Assembly (NCBI RefSeq): GCF_000400465.1
Contig: NW_008806280.1
Coordinates: 507,634-539,633 of the forward strand
Source: Wallemia ichthyophaga EXF-994
Lineage: Eukaryota; Fungi; Basidiomycota
DNA: 32,000 nucleotides
Direction of reading: 5' to 3'
Both the position numbers and the translations under genes were made by a program. Shown here piece by piece: positions 3,063 to 32,000 of the stretch. The stretch's first letter is position 1, and each line of letters opens with the position of its first letter. The notes below the pieces were generated by a model. That model worked only from the letters and a program-made list of their open reading frames with translations. It searched no databases and was not told the DNA's origin.

Positions 3063-5048
3063 ATGGACAGTCCCAGTAAATCACTTAAACGAAATCACAA
3101 CCAAGATGATTTGTCGCGGTCGTTGAAGCAGCGCACTTACGAGACTAGCATTAGTAAATCACAGTATGAGCGTAAATTACTGGCATTTGAAACGACAAAG
3201 AGAGAATTCGAGATAACGATGCGGGAGAAGAATCTGCAGCATGGAAAATTGGTTAAGGATATCTCTTATTATAAGGACAAGGCGGAGACAGCGCACAAGG
3301 AGAAGGACGCGGCTCTTGCACTGGCTAATCAGAACAAGACGGAGAATGATAAAACACAGAGCCAGCACAGATACACGCTTGGTCAATTAAAAGAGGAGAA
3401 TATTCAATTGAAAATGGATTTGGACAGCCTTCAATCACAGTACACACGCCAAATCCATTCCAAGGATTCTGTGATTAGTTCAATCGAGCATAGGTGTGCT
3501 TCTCTAGAAGAAGATCTTCATTCTGCCATCGAAACTTCCAATCTGAGACAATCCTTACTCGAAAATACCCGCAGGTCGTTGGATACCCTCGAACAAGACA
3601 AGTCATCGAGTAACATTGACTCCTCACACGCTTACACCTCTTTCATGCGCGATGAGCTCTCTAAGCAGTCCTCCATCAACAAACATTTGGAATCCCAGAA
3701 CAAATCGTTGAACAGAGACTTGAACGGGCTTAAAGAGAAGTCTGCTAAATTTGACGTTCTTAGAGAGGAGAAATTGGCGCTCTCCTCTAAACTAAAGATG
3801 CTCGATAGAGTAAGCACGCAGTTGTCCAGTGTGGAGTTGGAGCGTGATTCCTTACTTAAAGAAAAGGAAGGCTGGCAAGATGTCTTACAACCAGGTGAAT
3901 CACCTGCCACTGTAACCACCCTCATTGCACAGCTAAGACTGGAGAATGCCACTCTCAGAGAGAGTGTAGGATCAACCAACGCTGATAAGAGTGGTCACTC
4001 TACAGAACTAGCTCAGTTGCTGGACCAAATCGACAGTCTGAGAAAGGCAGAAGCGCAGCTGCAAATTAACGTTGAGAAACTCACCACCTCCACCACAAGC
4101 CAGTACAGACTACTAGAGTTGTCACAACAGGAAGTGTCCTCGCTGAAGAAACAACTCGACACAATACTATCAGAAGAAGAGACACTTAATGCTCACAAAC
4201 TTGACACTCTTCATCACGACAGAATGGTTGGTTTGGAGGGGCTATTGCAGCAGCACAAAAGCGAGAATGAGAAGCTGGCAAGAGAGATGTTCAATCTGTC
4301 CAAGAGCACAACGACTGACACGAGTAATGAGAAAGCCTTCCAACTCAAGATAGACCACGCTGAGCAGACAATCGTCTCCCTCAAAGCTGAAGCGCAGGAG
4401 GAAATAAACAAATTGGCTGAGCAAGTGGCACACCTCGAGCATAAAGTGGGCAGAGGAGAGTTCAATTGCAAGAATATTCGCGTGCTAGAAATGCGCGATA
4501 ATCCAATCTCCCAAGACTACGCTATACGCAGCGAGACGCTGAGTGCGTTGAGAGAGGAGAACAGAATGCTTTTGGAGGAGAAGGAGGGGAGGGAGGAGAA
4601 TGCGATGCAATCAGTGCAATCGACACATCCGTCACTCCCCCTCCAAACAACCCTCAATCACACCAAGGAAATAAAGACACTGGAGCAGCAGCTCTCCGAC
4701 AAAGACAAGCGTATGCTGCGCCTCAAGGGCATTTTCTCAGACAAAGCTGCTGAATTTCGCGAAGCTATATACTCGTTGCTGGGTTACAGAGTACAATTTC
4801 TCCCCAACGGACGCGTACGACTCAACTCGGCGTATGCAGCCTCAGAAAGCGGGGGAATACTCTTCCAATCGAATGAAGACGACCAGGGGACTATGAAAGT
4901 GGAAGATGGGGGGCTTGATGGTGTAGAGGATTTGCTAAGGTTCTGGGTTAATGAGAGAGAGTCAATACCGTGTTTCATGGCAAACCTCTGCCTGGAACTG
5001 TGGGATGCAAATGAGAGGAACGAAAGAGGACGCTTGGCTGTGCGGTAG
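3063..5048 (+). CDS. MAD1: Spindle assembly checkpoint protein Mad1
   Basis: 661-aa intronless coiled-coil ORF with a Mad2-interaction motif (RVLEMRDNP) and the conserved C-terminal domain (RLKGIFSDKAAEFREAIYSLLGYRVQFLPNGRVRLNSAY). Confidence 0.95.
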   Translation: MDSPSKSLKRNHNQDDLSRSLKQRTYETSISKSQYERKLLAFETTKREFEITMREKNLQHGKLVKDISYYKDKAETAHKEKDAALALANQNKTENDKTQSQHRYTLGQLKEENIQLKMDLDSLQSQYTRQIHSKDSVISSIEHRCASLEEDLHSAIETSNLRQSLLENTRRSLDTLEQDKSSSNIDSSHAYTSFMRDELSKQSSINKHLESQNKSLNRDLNGLKEKSAKFDVLREEKLALSSKLKMLDRVSTQLSSVELERDSLLKEKEGWQDVLQPGESPATVTTLIAQLRLENATLRESVGSTNADKSGHSTELAQLLDQIDSLRKAEAQLQINVEKLTTSTTSQYRLLELSQQEVSSLKKQLDTILSEEETLNAHKLDTLHHDRMVGLEGLLQQHKSENEKLAREMFNLSKSTTTDTSNEKAFQLKIDHAEQTIVSLKAEAQEEINKLAEQVAHLEHKVGRGEFNCKNIRVLEMRDNPISQDYAIRSETLSALREENRMLLEEKEGREENAMQSVQSTHPSLPLQTTLNHTKEIKTLEQQLSDKDKRMLRLKGIFSDKAAEFREAIYSLLGYRVQFLPNGRVRLNSAYAASESGGILFQSNEDDQGTMKVEDGGLDGVEDLLRFWVNERESIPCFMANLCLELWDANERNERGRLAVR

Positions 5049-26893: not shown

Positions 26894-27976
26894 ATGCGGT
26901 TGAAATTAAGCAGAAAGTTGTCAAACAGGCAAGCAACTCTCCCAGATGGTTTTGAAGGCTCGGGTTTGAAGATGGGTTCAAGTAACACCGGCAATAGTGA
27001 AACACAAAAGCAAGCAGGTCAATCTGAAGATGAAGCAGACGATGTCTTCAATATCCCTGAAAGTGAGTCTTACCTTGTACATCCAAAACAAACTAACAAT
27101 ATCCAAGACCCTCCTGACTCTGACCAGCCAAAAATCGACCAGCACCAACATGGCAACGAGAATCACAACGAATATTCCTCAGCTCTCGCACCCTCACTCA
27201 CCATTGGTATCGTCGCAATCATCATCATTTCTGCCGTCGTCGTTCGCTACATGAGAAGGAAGAAGAAGCTGGAAATGCTCGGCAACGCTCCAAACAAACA
27301 GAGCGAAAAGGAGAAGCAGCTGGTGGACAATGAGCCGTATGCCAACTCTTCATTAAACTACGGTGACTACGACACTACGCCTCCACCCACATACACAATC
27401 CTGCCTCGGAGTACGTCCCTTAACACTCACGGCACCTTCGGCAACGACCAATTTGGCACTATAAACAGTGTCAACAGTGGTATCAACCAATTTGGCGCTA
27501 TGAACAGCGTCAACAGCGGCAACAACCAATTTGGCACCATAAACAGCGCCAACACCGTCAACACCATGCAAGATCTCCCTCCGACACCAGCCCCTGAAGA
27601 CGAGGGGGACTTGCGTGGACTTGAACCACCAAGGAGACCTTACGTACAATCGCCGCCAACTGTTCATTTTGCACCAATCATGCCGCGCTCCTCCTCCCTT
27701 GGGAGCGTTAATTTGCCGCAATCAGCTTCCCAAGGTAGTGTCAGGAGTGTAAATGAACGTACTGCCAGTCCAACTGAGCGCGCTGCAAGTCCATTATCAC
27801 ATTCATCAAGTCATGCTTCTTTTCGACCACAGTCTGTCACACCGGTGCCCAGAAAAACCCCTTCCCCATCCCAACTAGTTTCGCCTCCGGCAAGTCAATC
27901 GCAGCCATCATCTCCCGCCTCAGTCACCTTCGTCAAGTCTCCACCTCCATACGCTCCATCTCCCCCACCTGGCTAA
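26894..27976 (+). CDS. Single-pass membrane protein with PPxY motifs and Asn-rich repeat (paralog B)
   Basis: 360-aa ORF. The TM segment SALAPSLTIGIVAIIIISAVVV is followed by RYMRRKKK; it carries PPPTY and PPPY motifs and a Ser/Pro-rich tail. The start is uncertain. Confidence 0.75.
   Translation: MRLKLSRKLSNRQATLPDGFEGSGLKMGSSNTGNSETQKQAGQSEDEADDVFNIPESESYLVHPKQTNNIQDPPDSDQPKIDQHQHGNENHNEYSSALAPSLTIGIVAIIIISAVVVRYMRRKKKLEMLGNAPNKQSEKEKQLVDNEPYANSSLNYGDYDTTPPPTYTILPRSTSLNTHGTFGNDQFGTINSVNSGINQFGAMNSVNSGNNQFGTINSANTVNTMQDLPPTPAPEDEGDLRGLEPPRRPYVQSPPTVHFAPIMPRSSSLGSVNLPQSASQGSVRSVNERTASPTERAASPLSHSSSHASFRPQSVTPVPRKTPSPSQLVSPPASQSQPSSPASVTFVKSPPPYAPSPPPG
27446..27562 (+). repeat. Three 39-bp tandem units encoding (D/N)QFG(T/A)(I/M)NS(V/A)N(S/T)xx
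   Basis: ACCAATTTGGC recurs at 39-bp spacing; the translation is DQFGTINSVNSGI NQFGAMNSVNSGN NQFGTINSANTVN. Confidence 0.9.
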
Positions 27977-29328: not shown

Positions 29329-29370
29329 AAAAAATTATAAACTCAAGTATATTATGTACTTAGGGCAAAA
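29329..29370 (-). terminator. Candidate Pol III oligo-dT terminators downstream of the permuted tRNA
   Basis: T4 at 29370-29367 (6 nt after G37) and T6 at 29334-29329 on the minus strand. Confidence 0.5.
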
Positions 29371-29376
29371 TTATAA

Positions 29377-29452
29377 CCGTAGTCGAATACTCTACCATTG
29401 AGCCAGCCGGCCGTGGTGACCGACGCAGGGCTCGAACCTGCAACCTTTCGAT
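29377..29452 (-). tRNA. Circularly permuted tRNA-Arg(ACG): 3' half (29452-29417), CCAC spacer, 5' half (29412-29377)
   Basis: Minus strand reads A TCGAA AGGTT GCAGG TTCGAGC CCTGC GTCGGTC A | CCAC | GGCCGGC TG GCTC AATGGTA GAGT A TTCGA CT ACG G. Re-ordered, it gives a 72-nt cloverleaf in which all four stems pair. Confidence 0.88.
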
Positions 29453-29463
29453 ATCAGTTACTC

Positions 29464-29474
29464 CCATTGAGCTA
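29464..29474 (-). promoter_or_regulatory. Pol III A-box-like element (TAGCTCAATGG) upstream of the tRNA 3' half
   Basis: Matches TRGYNNANNNG and is nearly identical to the D-arm A-box of the 5' half (TGGCTCAATGG). It starts 36 nt before the B-box GGTTCGAGCC. Confidence 0.65.
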
Positions 29475-29614
29475 GTTTGAATATGTAAACGTCTTGATCT
29501 TTGTGAGGTGAAACTGCACACAAAGAGCAAGGCGCTGAGATTAATAAAAGAATTAAGTCTAAGATGTATTAAAAGAAAAAGTAGTCGTTTAAATAGTTTA
29601 GAATTCTAGGTTTT

Positions 29615-29712: not shown

Positions 29713-29739
29713 TTAGGTTTATAGGTTAGGTTAGGTTAG
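29713..29739 (+). repeat. Telomere-like (TTAGG)n tract, imperfect
   Basis: Read directly: TTAGG TTTA TAGG TTAGG TTAGG TTAG. Confidence 0.75.
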
Positions 29740-32000
29740 CAAGCATTTAATTATTGTCGATACAATTTGTCTTATTTCTAAAATACTTTAAAAAGATGAA
29801 AAATTTGTGGTAATCCAAATGATCGCTTAGAACTCAAAATACGCTGCCCTTGCGCGTATAAGGCCCAATGATAACAGTCTTGTAAGCATTTCATAATGCG
29901 GCGTTATCTTTCGCCACTTCTGAAACACTTCATTCGAAGAATCCGTTACGAAACCCCCCGCAGTGAGAAGAAGCGGAACAAAGGAAGTATCAGTGAGGTC
30001 CCCGTACTTGTTGACCTTTTCACGCTCATAAAACGACAGCTCCATCTTGTACCGACCCAATGGGCCAAGATTCTTGAGGTGGGTCGCTGCCGTCTTCACA
30101 CTGGCTGTAGGGGCGATTATCGTAAGGTCGTACTCACACGAGTTCCCTTTAGACGCTGCTGGGCCAGTTACCCGAAAGTCCGTTCTTAAATGAGTATTTC
30201 TTACAGCTGGCTCAGGAGTAATTGTTGAAGCGGGAGCTGCTGCAAGAAATCTCATAAGAAGGCCTTTCACATAATCATGCCGAGCCGTCCTAAGGTTTTC
30301 GCGTGAGTTACAGATATCATCATGGCCTACAGAATTCTCCATGCCACATTTCCTGCAATTGTTATCCTTACCAGGACAAAGAGTACGAATGTGTAACGCA
30401 TACGAAATCTCAGTGTCCGAAAGCTTCAGTTGCTTGTTGTATGGTATTGTTGATAACCATTTCCGGCCCAGCTTTGATTGGCTATCCAGCACGACGTTCC
30501 TCTGATCCCGGCTAAGTGTATCAAACTTCTTGTTGAATTCCAACTCATAAAAAGCTCCAGTACGTTGACGCTGCAGCGTTAAAGTCTCATACGGACCACT
30601 ACGTTGATGAAAAATGGCCTCTAACGTAACGCAAGCTTGTTCCATCATCGAAGCATACGCCATGGGAGCCACGTCTGAATGTAACGGTACACCCAAACCT
30701 CCATAGCGCTGAGGAATGCCGATGATCCAAGTGTCCAAGACTTGACGACGTGATGACCCACGTAACTTCTTCACTTTTTCATGAAGAAGCGTATCCAACA
30801 CATTCCATTCCTCCAACATGTCATCAGTCCTGAGGCTGCGCTGCAAATGACGTAGCTCTGCTTGAATGCATCTAAGTAAAAGCAAGAGCTGATGTTGGGA
30901 ATGAACACCGTCTAGTGCTTCGACCTTGGAACGAACTTGAGCAGTCTTGGAACGGAGGAAGCCTGCACGTGCTTCACGCGGCCCGACCATGGATCCCAGG
31001 ATCTCGCGCCCATGTTGCCTCACATCGTCCCATGATACCACCGAACACTTGGAGCGGTTAAGCTGTAGACCACAAGTTACCTTGGCGAAGAACTCCTCGA
31101 CGTCTGCCATGACATCCTCGGTTGCAAAAAGGTACACGTCGTCGAGATACGCAAGCACCATTGCCCTATCACCAAGTATCTTTTGTAAGTCTTGGAGTGT
31201 ATCCTTCACCGCTAACGAAAACAGTAGCGGGCCAAGCGGATCACCTTGCCGAACGCCTTGACTGGATTGAAGGGACGCCTGCGTATCATCGCCGTTGACT
31301 AGGAGTGAGCTAGGTTGATTATAAGCCCACTTGACTGCTTTGGTGATTGGCTGTAAATGCTTGAAGGTTGCGGATGCTAATACTTTCCTATCGATAGTGT
31401 TGAAAGCATTACGAAAGTCCAACGATATCATGTATTTGTACTGTCCTTCATCCTTATCGACTTGCAGTTGCGACGCAAGCACGATGGGCTCTACGCCTCC
31501 ACTTGTACCTACACCAAGCTGATATGGATGGAGACAGGACGGCTTGAAATATGTACGCATAACAACCTTCATAACTAGACGATAAAAGATCTCACCGACA
31601 GCTATTGGACGGACACCACCATCCGATTTTGCAAGAGGGATGAGTCGGCTGGCACAGAGCATCTGTTGAGCGGGGGCTGTACCTTGTACGACTAGACGCA
31701 CTAGCAGATCCATAAAGTGCTTGAATGAATCCACCTTGTACGCCTCCTTGGTTAGACTGTAAGTCCAGCCAGAAGGTCCTGCCGCTGTCGATGTGTTCAT
31801 CCTTTTCATCGCTTCCAAGCTATCCCCATCAGCTGGCATAAGACCCGAACGATACCCGTTGATACCCTTGAAAGGGTTAGGTTCACCTTGAGGGTGTTTG
31901 CTACTTAGCTGATCTATAACCTCACCCGTCACTGGAAGTATGCCGGCTTTGTCTCCCAAGACTCGACTCGCGGTACCGAGGCTTAGGTGAACAAGCATTT
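29740..32000 (-). mobile_element. Non-LTR retrotransposon, CRE clade (Cnl1/MoTeR/SLACS-like): RT + CCHC zinc knuckle + restriction-like endonuclease; 5' part lies beyond the window
   Basis: ORF 29827-31998 is uninterrupted for 723 aa. RT motifs: RPIAVGEIFYRL, QLGVGTSGGVEP, SLDFRNAFNTIDR, QGVRQGDPLGPLLF, AYLDD. Zinc knuckle: CRKCGMENSVGHDDIC. REL motifs: RHD, EP, RTD, YDLT, EKVNKY, FVPLLL. The 3' boundary is inferred from the TTAGG tract. Confidence 0.92.

Follow-up and report, generated by a model that had tools for sequence, protein, structure and literature searches.

The final 32 kb of contig KE007230.1 of Wallemia ichthyophaga EXF-994 (assembly GCA_000400465.1), hereafter the window (32,000 nucleotides), carry a tRNA-Arg(ACG) gene whose halves lie in reversed order, preceded by a short leader that contains a second, D-arm-like sequence. 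Coordinates are window positions; the gene, its leader and the D-arm-like relic are located on the minus strand, and the leader and trailer are numbered relative to A38 (−) and G37 (+), respectively. On this strand, positions 29452..29377 comprise the tRNA's 3′ half, a 4-nt linker CCAC and the 5′ half, the complete order being leader, ATCGAAAGGTTGCAGGTTCGAGCCCTGCGTCGGTCA (3′ half), CCAC, GGCCGGCTGGCTCAATGGTAGAGTATTCGACTACGG (5′ half) and TTATAATTTT (trailer).

The 3′ half (A38..A73; 29417..29452) includes the 3′ strand of the anticodon stem, the variable loop, the T-arm, the acceptor 3′ strand and the discriminator. Its B-box, GGTTCGAGCCC (tRNA positions 52–62; 29428..29438), as read from the sequence, is identical in all intact copies of the gene. 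The linker (29413..29416) corresponds to a genome-encoded CCA plus one C, placed between the discriminator A73 and G1. The 5′ half (G1..G37; 29377..29412) includes the acceptor 5′ strand, the real D-arm, the 5′ strand of the anticodon stem and the anticodon ACG; the real A-box within it (29395..29405) lies 33 nt downstream of the B-box. The gene is preceded by a 28-nt 5′ leader (29453..29480), the interval singled out in the first-pass annotation of this DNA, and similarity to a paralogue of the gene extends from −29 to +12. In the trailer (29367..29376), positions +1..+4 are predicted to pair with the leader, and a T4 run (29367..29370) is the first candidate terminator for RNA polymerase III (Pol III); a T6 run is found further on (29329..29334).

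When the window was analyzed in its native order, neither ARAGORN nor Rfam returned any hit. After the halves had been rejoined with the 5′ half put first, ARAGORN called a 72-nt tRNA-Arg(ACG) with a perfect cloverleaf, in which U8, G18G19, U33, the T-loop sequence UUCGA and a 7-nt anticodon loop are all present. The first-pass annotation had claimed that the gene is permuted, with the B-box ahead of its own A-box, and this is confirmed by the order 29452..29417, CCAC, 29412..29377 and by the cloverleaf obtained on rejoining. By the sequence-level definition, the gene is a type II (junction 37/38) circularly permuted tRNA gene.

The comparison set comprised three species-level lineages (W. ichthyophaga, W. 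hederae and W. mellicola). The same permuted gene was found in all three at a syntenic locus beside a hydrophobin gene, and the order 3′ half, linker, 5′ half was repeated in four further loci beyond the window copy. W. ichthyophaga thus has two copies, the window copy and a hydrophobin-locus paralogue, both of which are carried by strain SPOL. A metagenome scan with a 24-mer of the 5′ half returned one contig, from W. mellicola and in permuted order, and the reference W. mellicola genome shows the identical arrangement beside the hydrophobin gene. ARAGORN called tRNA-Arg(ACG) from the rejoined halves in all five copies. An additional W. mellicola-like contig (locus L018 of our set) showed no new leader divergence, and in a more distant Wallemia-like lineage (loci L008–L013) the permuted gene is absent within ±10 kb of the tricalbin gene.

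A comparison of W. ichthyophaga with W. mellicola gave 72/72 identical tRNA positions, against 72% identity for the tricalbin proteins; the leaders and trailers are unalignable. The W. hederae tRNA has five differences, one in the D-loop and four forming two compensatory pairs (U28-A42 to C-G and C3-G70 to A-U), each of which links the separated halves. Standard pairs occupy 83/83 pair cells across the aligned copies, and the boundary of conservation is exact: it stops at G37 and resumes at A38. Between the window copy and its paralogue there are 0/72 differences in the tRNA, compared to 4/29 in the leader, 1/4 in the linker and about one third of trailer positions; at a flank divergence of ~15–20%, an unchanged tRNA would have a probability of <1e-5 without selection. 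Features common to all copies are the G at −3, pairing of the leader with C35–G37 and the trailer, and a downstream T-run. The runs are T4 (+7) and T6 (+43) for the window copy and T4 and T5 for the hydrophobin-locus copy; W. hederae has a T6 and W. mellicola a T7. Since the halves are conserved or covary across species while the flanks are unalignable, the sequence comparison points to a working gene, and it is very probable that the permuted tRNA-Arg(ACG) gene is genuine and under selection.

Linker sequences vary: CCAC occurs in the window copy and W. hederae (L015:5983-5986), CTAC or CTGC at the hydrophobin locus of W. ichthyophaga, and a single A in W. mellicola. The CTGC form is that of the EXF-994 reference assembly (KE007226.1; L021 ~1679-1755), in which the T-loop/B-box of the hydrophobin-locus copy is also one T longer (GGTTTCGAGCCC); at this locus, the T-loop sequence is standard and the linker CTAC in two other strains. 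Of the three differences over 1.6 kb of the hydrophobin locus, two lie in the 76-nt gene. The extra T is either a real defect, in which case the window copy is the standard one, or an assembly error at a repeated sequence.

The identity of the tRNA was judged against a canonical W. mellicola tRNA-Arg(TCT) gene. Interrupted at 37/38 by a 38-nt intron, the latter shares the D-arm and has a T-arm that is nearly the same. Because of this shared D-arm, the tRNA body can be regarded as Arg-type for the genus. The possibility that the halves are tRNA-Trp-derived fragments with a chance ACG anticodon, suggested by a likeness to yeast tRNA-Trp, was ruled out by the D- and T-arms of tRNA-Arg(TCT) and by the retention of the ACG loop in all copies. 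A chimeric retro-pseudogene, composed of a mature tRNA and a tRNA half and suggested by the CCA, was rejected for the present state of the gene by covariation and conservation, but is retained as a possible origin.

The D-arm-like relic in the window leader, TAGCTCAATGGGAGT (−22..−8; 29460..29474), is a direct repeat of the real D-arm. A repeat search independently paired the two as a direct repeat (13/15 matches ungapped, 69 nt apart), and a gapped alignment of CTAGCTCAATGG--GAGTA with CTGGCTCAATGGTAGAGTA gave 17/19 matches with one 2-nt gap. The relic score was reached by only 0.15% of 2000 dinucleotide shuffles of the leader (p≈0.0015). The motif that the first-pass annotation had placed upstream of the 3′ half, 2 nt shorter than the real D-arm, is therefore real, and its reported position 36 nt before the B-box proved exact (start to start, from the relic T at 29474 to the first G of the B-box at 29438), which leaves ~25 bp between the boxes. 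The accompanying description of a motif without surrounding tRNA strands holds upstream, where there is no acceptor strand; downstream, only a possible ACT (A31 C32 U33) could be recognized. Judged from these alignments, the relic is probably homologous to the D-arm, and would best be explained as what is left of a second 5′-half copy. Another D-arm-like sequence in the hydrophobin-locus copy (AAGCTCAACAG at −51) was discarded as not significant (p=0.14).

The first 11 nt of the relic, TAGCTCAATGG (29464..29474), form an A-box-like element that matches the A-box consensus T-R-G-C-N-N-A-R-N-G-G at 8/8 specified positions. The chance of such a match in a 60-nt leader is ~0.001, and 10 A-box-like 11-mers of this kind were found in 207 kb-strands of Wallemia DNA when tRNA genes and the regions immediately upstream of them were set aside. 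TFIIIC, which is expected in Wallemia as in any fungus, would thereby be offered an A-box-like site upstream of the B-box, restoring the A-then-B order. In comparison with a canonical type-2 Pol III promoter (A-box at positions 8–19, B-box at 52–62, TFIIIC), the leader resembles it in the order of an A-like element followed by the B-box, in the 8/8 consensus of the window copy and in the perfect GGTTCGAGCCC; it differs in that the putative A-like element lies outside the mature tRNA, at a distance of 36 nt instead of 43, while the true A-box is situated downstream of the B-box.

The equivalent 11-mers in the other copies are less regular. The hydrophobin-locus paralogue of W. ichthyophaga has TATCTCAATGG at the same start (−22) and the same 36 nt from the B-box start, with 7/8 consensus positions (G10 replaced by T). 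In W. mellicola, TGGTTCAATTG starts at −19, 33 nt from the B-box start, and shows 6/8 consensus positions; it is identical to the real A-box at 9/11 positions (p≈0.0003, for a position window picked post hoc). In W. hederae, TAATCCAGCGG starts at −18, 32 nt from the B-box start, and its 6/8 match is at chance level. The resemblance of whole leaders to the D-arm declines in the same direction, with shuffle p values of ≈0.0015 (window), 0.005 (paralogue) and 0.04 (W. mellicola), and no significance in W. hederae. A-box positions T8, R9, A14, R15 and G19 are kept in the 11-mers of four of four lineages.

What speaks for an A-box role is that the D-arm-like 11-mer persists at a near-fixed distance in W. 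ichthyophaga and W. mellicola, the most distant lineages, although their leaders are otherwise unalignable. This is also the part of the first-pass reading, in which the relic serves as a replacement A-box, that withstood the comparison: the consensus is complete in the window copy, and a D-arm-like 11-mer recurs at −22 and −19. Other observations tell against that role. The consensus is broken by G10 to T in the paralogue and by C11 to T and G18 to T in W. mellicola, while the tRNA is equally conserved, and G10, C11 or G18 is lost in 3/4 copies. The W. hederae match lies within chance (p 0.05–0.2), and the position window for the relic statistics across copies was picked after inspection of the data. 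The A-to-B start spacing of 32–36 nt falls outside the natural range of about 43 nt or more, being 7–11 nt shorter than the 43 nt in the tRNA itself, though it is similar across lineages. For yeast TFIIIC, the distance between the A and B boxes is 30–60 bp, and to our knowledge no natural tRNA geometry has a spacing as short as that between relic and B-box.

The first-pass annotation had proposed comparing the conservation of the 11-mer with that of its flanks, and the outcome of this comparison was mixed: the 11-mer persists in the paralogue and in W. mellicola, but the W. hederae match is no better than chance, and conservation of the 11-mer between the paralogues (0/11 differences against 4/18 elsewhere in the leader) is not significant (hypergeometric p≈0.13), which counts as a further point against the A-box. 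So does the double change from G.U to U-A between the paralogues, which preserves a predicted RNA hairpin and breaks the A-box. Finally, an 8/8 A-box-like relic is also present upstream of the canonical W. mellicola tRNA-Arg(TCT), and such relics may be a mutational by-product.

The promoter question also concerns the region further upstream. W. mellicola and W. hederae share a TATA-like sequence, TATACACA, at about −59..−51, which could drive TFIIIB directly. This sequence would set a start near −30, where the leader-trailer helices of these two species (−28, −27) and the similarity between the W. ichthyophaga paralogues (−29) begin. The window copy has no TATA-like motif at the ancestral −59..−51, and it is the only copy with an 8/8 A-box. 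Upstream of −29 it has nothing in common with the ancestral hydrophobin locus. Since it appears to be under selection yet has been relocated, it must either hold its promoter within ~117 nt or have gained a new one; a relic A-box would matter most in this subtelomeric copy, stripped of the ancestral upstream region. The contrast with the upstream TATA-dependent promoters proposed for algal permuted genes, drawn in the first-pass annotation, is not clean, because W. mellicola and W. hederae carry TATACACA. Another candidate, a TATA-like motif common to all leaders (ACATATTCAAACT in the window and TATACACAAACT in W. mellicola and W. hederae), was set aside: the match is probably a coincidence, since the syntenic W. 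ichthyophaga copy lacks it.

Weighing these points, we regard it as possible, though on balance doubtful, that the relic functions as an A-box. The combined reading of the interval, i.e. the leader of a functional permuted tRNA-Arg(ACG) gene with the relic serving as an A-box-like site, is put forward tentatively as the preferred one.

If the relic were instead without present function, either a passive remnant of the real D-arm or a copy of it made recently by gene conversion or slippage, transcription would depend on the B-box together with upstream TFIIIB-binding sequences, such as TATACACA in W. mellicola and W. hederae or TACATAT at −35..−29 in the window. The loss of the consensus in 3/4 copies, the chance-level match of W. 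hederae and the insignificant excess of 11-mer conservation between the paralogues are what would be expected in this case. The same applies to the canonical W. mellicola tRNA-Arg(TCT), in which a comparable 11-mer, TGGCGCAACGG (L014:21670..21660, minus strand; 8/8 consensus), lies 20 nt upstream of the real A-box; because of it, short duplications of the 5′ end seem to arise around Wallemia tRNA genes anyway. It is difficult to reconcile such a remnant, however, with a 9–10/11 match to the D-arm that is kept at an equivalent position in the two most distant lineages, while the remaining leader is beyond alignment. Under neutrality, a relic of the age of the genus would be expected to have decayed, and a recent origin needs two independent events at the same place. 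An inert relic is therefore considered somewhat unlikely.

Identity between the 11-mer of tRNA-Arg(TCT) and the A-box of that gene is 9/11; when the flank is included, 12/14 positions agree (CAGTGGCGCAACGG against CAGTGGCTCAATGG of the same gene). Upstream of W. hederae tRNA-Val(AAC) (L015:4114-4175, minus strand), a GC-rich self-complementary stretch, GGCAGCGCGTGATGTAGCGCGGTGAGCGCTAGCTCCCGCGCC, was found between a TATACATACA motif and the tRNA. It holds a 6/8 A-box-like sequence, TAGCGCGGTGA, and the W. ichthyophaga orthologue lacks the stretch.

The structure of the precursor was predicted with RNAfold, with the cloverleaf enforced or not, and the same overall design was obtained for all copies: the anticodon stem is followed by a 2x2 or 3x3 internal loop containing the 3′ cut site, and then by a leader helix. 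The predicted internal loop is formed by (−2, −1, A38) facing (C32, U33, A34), and the predicted helix by the leader from −3 upstream with C35-G36-G37 and the first trailer bases. In the window copy, the leader segment GTAACTG (−9..−3; 29455..29461, minus strand) is predicted to pair with C35-G36-G37 and trailer positions +1..+4. The G at −3, which the eukaryotic anticodon-intron pair leads one to expect, does not vary among the copies, and −4 and −5 are always pyrimidines pairing with G36 and G37. The predicted leader-trailer helix measures 13 bp in W. mellicola and ~20 bp in W. hederae, but only 5–7 bp in W. ichthyophaga, in which the −6:+1 pair is A-U (window), G-C (hydrophobin locus of strain SPNX) or G.U (hydrophobin locus of strain SPOL). 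Checked for a bulge-helix-bulge motif (BHB), the predicted W. mellicola fold comes close to h-B-H(4 bp)-B-h′, whereas the W. ichthyophaga fold buries the 5′ site in an unbroken helix and does not form a strict BHB. In these models, the precursor looks like an ordinary intron-containing pre-tRNA with an opened intron.

As RNA, the relic is predicted to form a 4-bp hairpin (GCUC/GAGU). The relic of the paralogue, TATCTCAATGGGAGA, retains this hairpin with its closing pair changed from G.U to U-A. It is conceivable that the element acts at this level, as a transcribed leader hairpin that stacks on the leader-anticodon/trailer helix, stands in for the outer helix of a BHB-like substrate and aids the endonuclease or ligase. 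Folding of the two W. ichthyophaga copies gives the hairpin at −3.2 and −2.9 kcal/mol; between them both bases of the closing pair have changed, and the hairpin abuts the leader-anticodon-trailer helix with its covarying −6:+1 pair; the same zone holds a hairpin in W. hederae (AATCC/GGATT) and the 13-bp leader-trailer helix in W. mellicola. Yet the hairpin is weak, a single compensatory event between two paralogues is thin evidence, and the proposal depends on a transcription start upstream of the element. Moreover, the predicted structure of the element differs by species: W. ichthyophaga has a hairpin, W. mellicola a loop together with part of the leader-trailer helix, and W. hederae another hairpin. 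This lack of a common RNA structure points to a constraint at the DNA level. A role of the hairpin in processing seems quite improbable.

By analogy with Cyanidioschyzon, a maturation pathway via a circular intermediate can be inferred. Pol III would transcribe the leader, 3′ half, CCAC, 5′ half and trailer, and stop at the T-run. The tRNA body would then fold, with the 3′ end of the leader pairing with C35–G37 and the start of the trailer in the manner of an opened intron. The tRNA splicing endonuclease, which in Wallemia is assumed to be of the Sen type common in fungi, would cleave after G37 and before A38, tRNA ligase would seal the circle, and RNase P together with 3′ trimming would open it at the 1–4 nt linker.

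With regard to the origin of the permutation, a tandem duplication-and-loss model for permuted tRNA genes has already been published, along with two reverse-transcription models (PMC3978253). The relic had been taken in the first-pass annotation as a record of tandem duplication. A remnant of the lost upstream 5′ half is indeed present in the window (p≈0.0015), but no trailer contains a remnant of the lost downstream 3′ half (p 0.26–0.66), and in W. ichthyophaga there is neither an intron remnant nor room for an intron between the relic and A38. In W. mellicola, leader positions −30..−15 repeat trailer positions +1..+16 at 14/16 (p 0.0015–0.008); duplication of a 30-nt intron would account for this, but the repeat is a palindrome and takes part in the leader-trailer helix as well.

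The spacer between the halves (1–4 nt) begins with CCA in 2/4 copies. Eukaryotic genomes normally do not encode the tRNA CCA, and algal permuted genes encode none. Because CCAC is present both in W. hederae and in the window, the ancestral linker of the hederae-ichthyophaga branch was accordingly a mature-looking CCA end nearly abutting G1. An RNA-level fusion of a mature 3′ end with the 5′ end (models B and C of PMC3978253) predicts a spacer of this kind. Since CCA is normally unencoded in eukaryotes, a junction made in RNA followed by reverse transcription would explain the linker at least as well as DNA tandem duplication. The relic alone does not record a tandem duplication of DNA, and an RNA-mediated origin appears at least as likely. 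For the window copy, the similarity limited to −29..+12 and a CCCTAA hexamer after the T4 run together hint that reverse transcription of the precursor placed it at the end of a chromosome.

Several properties of the Wallemia genes recall those of Cyanidioschyzon merolae: the 3′ half precedes the 5′ half on the same strand, the acceptor ends are separated by a short intervening sequence, a T-run follows downstream, and leader and trailer pair at the junction. In C. merolae, the intervening sequence is 7–74 nt long, compared to a linker of 1–4 nt in Wallemia, and several junctions occur, compared to the single junction 37/38 of this basidiomycete. A further difference is the A-box-like relic in the leader of a fungus, a group expected to have TFIIIC, and CCA is encoded in some Wallemia copies, in contrast to its absence from the algal permuted genes. 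The permuted genes of C. merolae were described by Soma et al. 2007 (reviewed in PMC3978253); over all organisms with permuted tRNA genes, the intervening sequence ranges from 1 to 74 nt, and C. merolae has no recognizable A/B-box-binding subunits of TFIIIC, an upstream TATA being thought to be used instead (PMC3978253).

Type II (37/38) permuted genes occur in prasinophyte green algae and in the nucleomorph of Bigelowiella natans (Maruyama et al. 2010). They share with the Wallemia genes the 37/38 junction and the proposed origin from a duplicated intron-containing gene. Ostreococcus lucimarinus has a comparable “fossil”, an extra 5′ half beside a permuted tRNA-Cys gene; it differs from the Wallemia relic in lying downstream, and no A-box role is known to have been proposed for it, only an ambiguous AT-rich region being found upstream. 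The archaeon Thermofilum pendens (Chan et al. 2011, PMC3218864) is similar in its very short intervening sequence (1 nt in one gene) and its genome-encoded CCA at the junction, but it has a 59/60 junction, archaeal promoters and a strict bulge-helix-bulge endonuclease, and an encoded CCA is normal in archaea and abnormal in a eukaryote.

Eukaryotic reports of permuted tRNA genes concern a few unicellular algae and a nucleomorph, with one archaeon outside the eukaryotes; a 2026 review states that among eukaryotes such genes are confined to unicellular algae. Our literature search found no report of a permuted tRNA gene in fungi or in Wallemia. The Wallemia gene can thus be described, from its sequence, as a permuted tRNA gene of an established type, with a promoter variant proposed as a hypothesis. 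A conserved fungal example would imply that maturing an “inside-out” precursor is within the capacity of the tRNA splicing machinery usual in fungi, and it means that an essential-looking tRNA is missed by standard finders in Wallemia genomes. With it, the problem of permuted-gene transcription also reaches a lineage in which A/B-box promoters are expected and direct tests with yeast genetics and extracts can be made, and the relic A-box offers a concrete target for a promoter test. The linker-encoded CCA, in turn, bears on whether permuted genes stem from DNA duplication or from reverse transcription of RNA.

These elements may be joined in a single scheme: Wallemia would decode CGU/CGC/CGA only via permuted tRNA-Arg(ACG) genes, with a ruler-type Sen endonuclease, Trl1 ligase and TFIIIC-dependent Pol III; a fossil A-box from the lost 5′ half would fix the B-before-A order; and the window copy would be a precursor retroposed at a chromosome end by a telomere-targeted reverse transcriptase (RT), active because its promoter travelled in the transcript. 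Such a fungus would routinely make a tRNA through a circular intermediate. In its entirety this scheme is unlikely.

The permuted gene lies 2.6 kb from the contig end. Between it and the end, an RT open reading frame (ORF) of an RT-only non-LTR (long terminal repeat) element (29827..32000, minus strand; Pfam RVT_1) reaches the window end, which is also the end of contig KE007230.1. Homologues of this ORF are RT-only proteins on 3–4 kb contigs, and include the Pyricularia oryzae reverse transcriptase I1VC87. On the 3′ side of the 3′ untranslated region of the element is a (CCTAA)n tract, (CCTAA)3 (29715..29745, minus strand), which is the mark of a former chromosome end or of a telomere-repeat target. 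The RT-only element at the contig end and the (CCTAA)n tracts together indicate a subtelomere-like setting for the permuted gene. A metagenome RT element (L017; RT 50% identical to that of the window) terminates in the same repeat, CCTAACCTAACCTAACTAACCTAA (L017:2966-3105), which points either to TTAGG-type repeats at Wallemia telomeres or to a repeat owned by the RT element. Over the 234 nt separating the tract from the permuted gene, there is no significant similarity to the L017 element beyond the repeat tract. A single CCCTAA (TTAGGG on the plus strand; 29360..29365, minus strand) is located 1 nt past the T4 run of the gene; only four CCCTAA hexamers exist in the window, counting both strands, and a link of this one to the permuted gene is speculative.

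This setting raises the question whether the subtelomeric duplicate in the window is dead. It might have been retrocopied from the precursor by the neighbouring RT and would be kept identical to its parent by gene conversion, and the motif would have no role at this locus. Its position near the contig end beside the RT-only element and (CCTAA)n agrees with this, as does the confinement of parental similarity to −29..+12, roughly a transcription unit, followed by CCCTAA after the T-run. Gene conversion is contradicted by the linker in the middle of the unit (CCAC vs CTAC/CTGC) and by the leader and trailer, which also differ, since a conversion tract over both halves should homogenize them. The 0/72 tRNA differences at the flank divergence given above would hardly be expected without selection, and the extra T in the T-loop of the other EXF-994 copy, if real, would make the window copy the standard one. 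A dead duplicate is accordingly regarded as highly improbable.

A retroelement primer-binding site was likewise examined, since the plus strand, TGGTGACCGAC, is similar to such sites; it was ruled out, as the neighbouring element has no LTR or integrase and the arrangement occurs at a non-repeat locus in three species. The RT element family resembles telomere-repeat-targeted (MoTeR-like) retrotransposons, with (CCTAA)3-4 after the element. MoTeR elements of P. oryzae are telomere-targeted and RT-only, and the connection made here is through the match to I1VC87. The likeness lies in the RT-only ORF of the neighbouring element, its position at the contig end and the short telomere-like repeats after it; the differences are the repeat unit (CCTAA here, not CCCTAA) and an identity to the Pyricularia protein of only ~32%, and the comparison concerns the context of the gene.

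In the W. mellicola metagenome contigs, an apparent inversion was observed beside the permuted gene (L003:1-500 compared with L004:1-170 and L005). Positions 1-147 of L004 are the exact reverse complement of L003 4-150, and the contigs rejoin at GCGTTTATAG (L003:494); the reference genome matches L003. This inversion may be a polymorphism or an assembly artefact at the short inverted repeat AAACGCGC/GCGCGTTT.

The remaining ORFs of the window are eukaryotic and include a MAD1-like protein (3063-5045), which KE007230.1 encodes with every residue the same, a MUN/C2 protein, a kinase and a malic enzyme. Within a further ORF of 360 aa without a Pfam match (26894-27976), three 39-nt tandem repeats that are 74–83% identical were found at 27430-27554 (plus strand).

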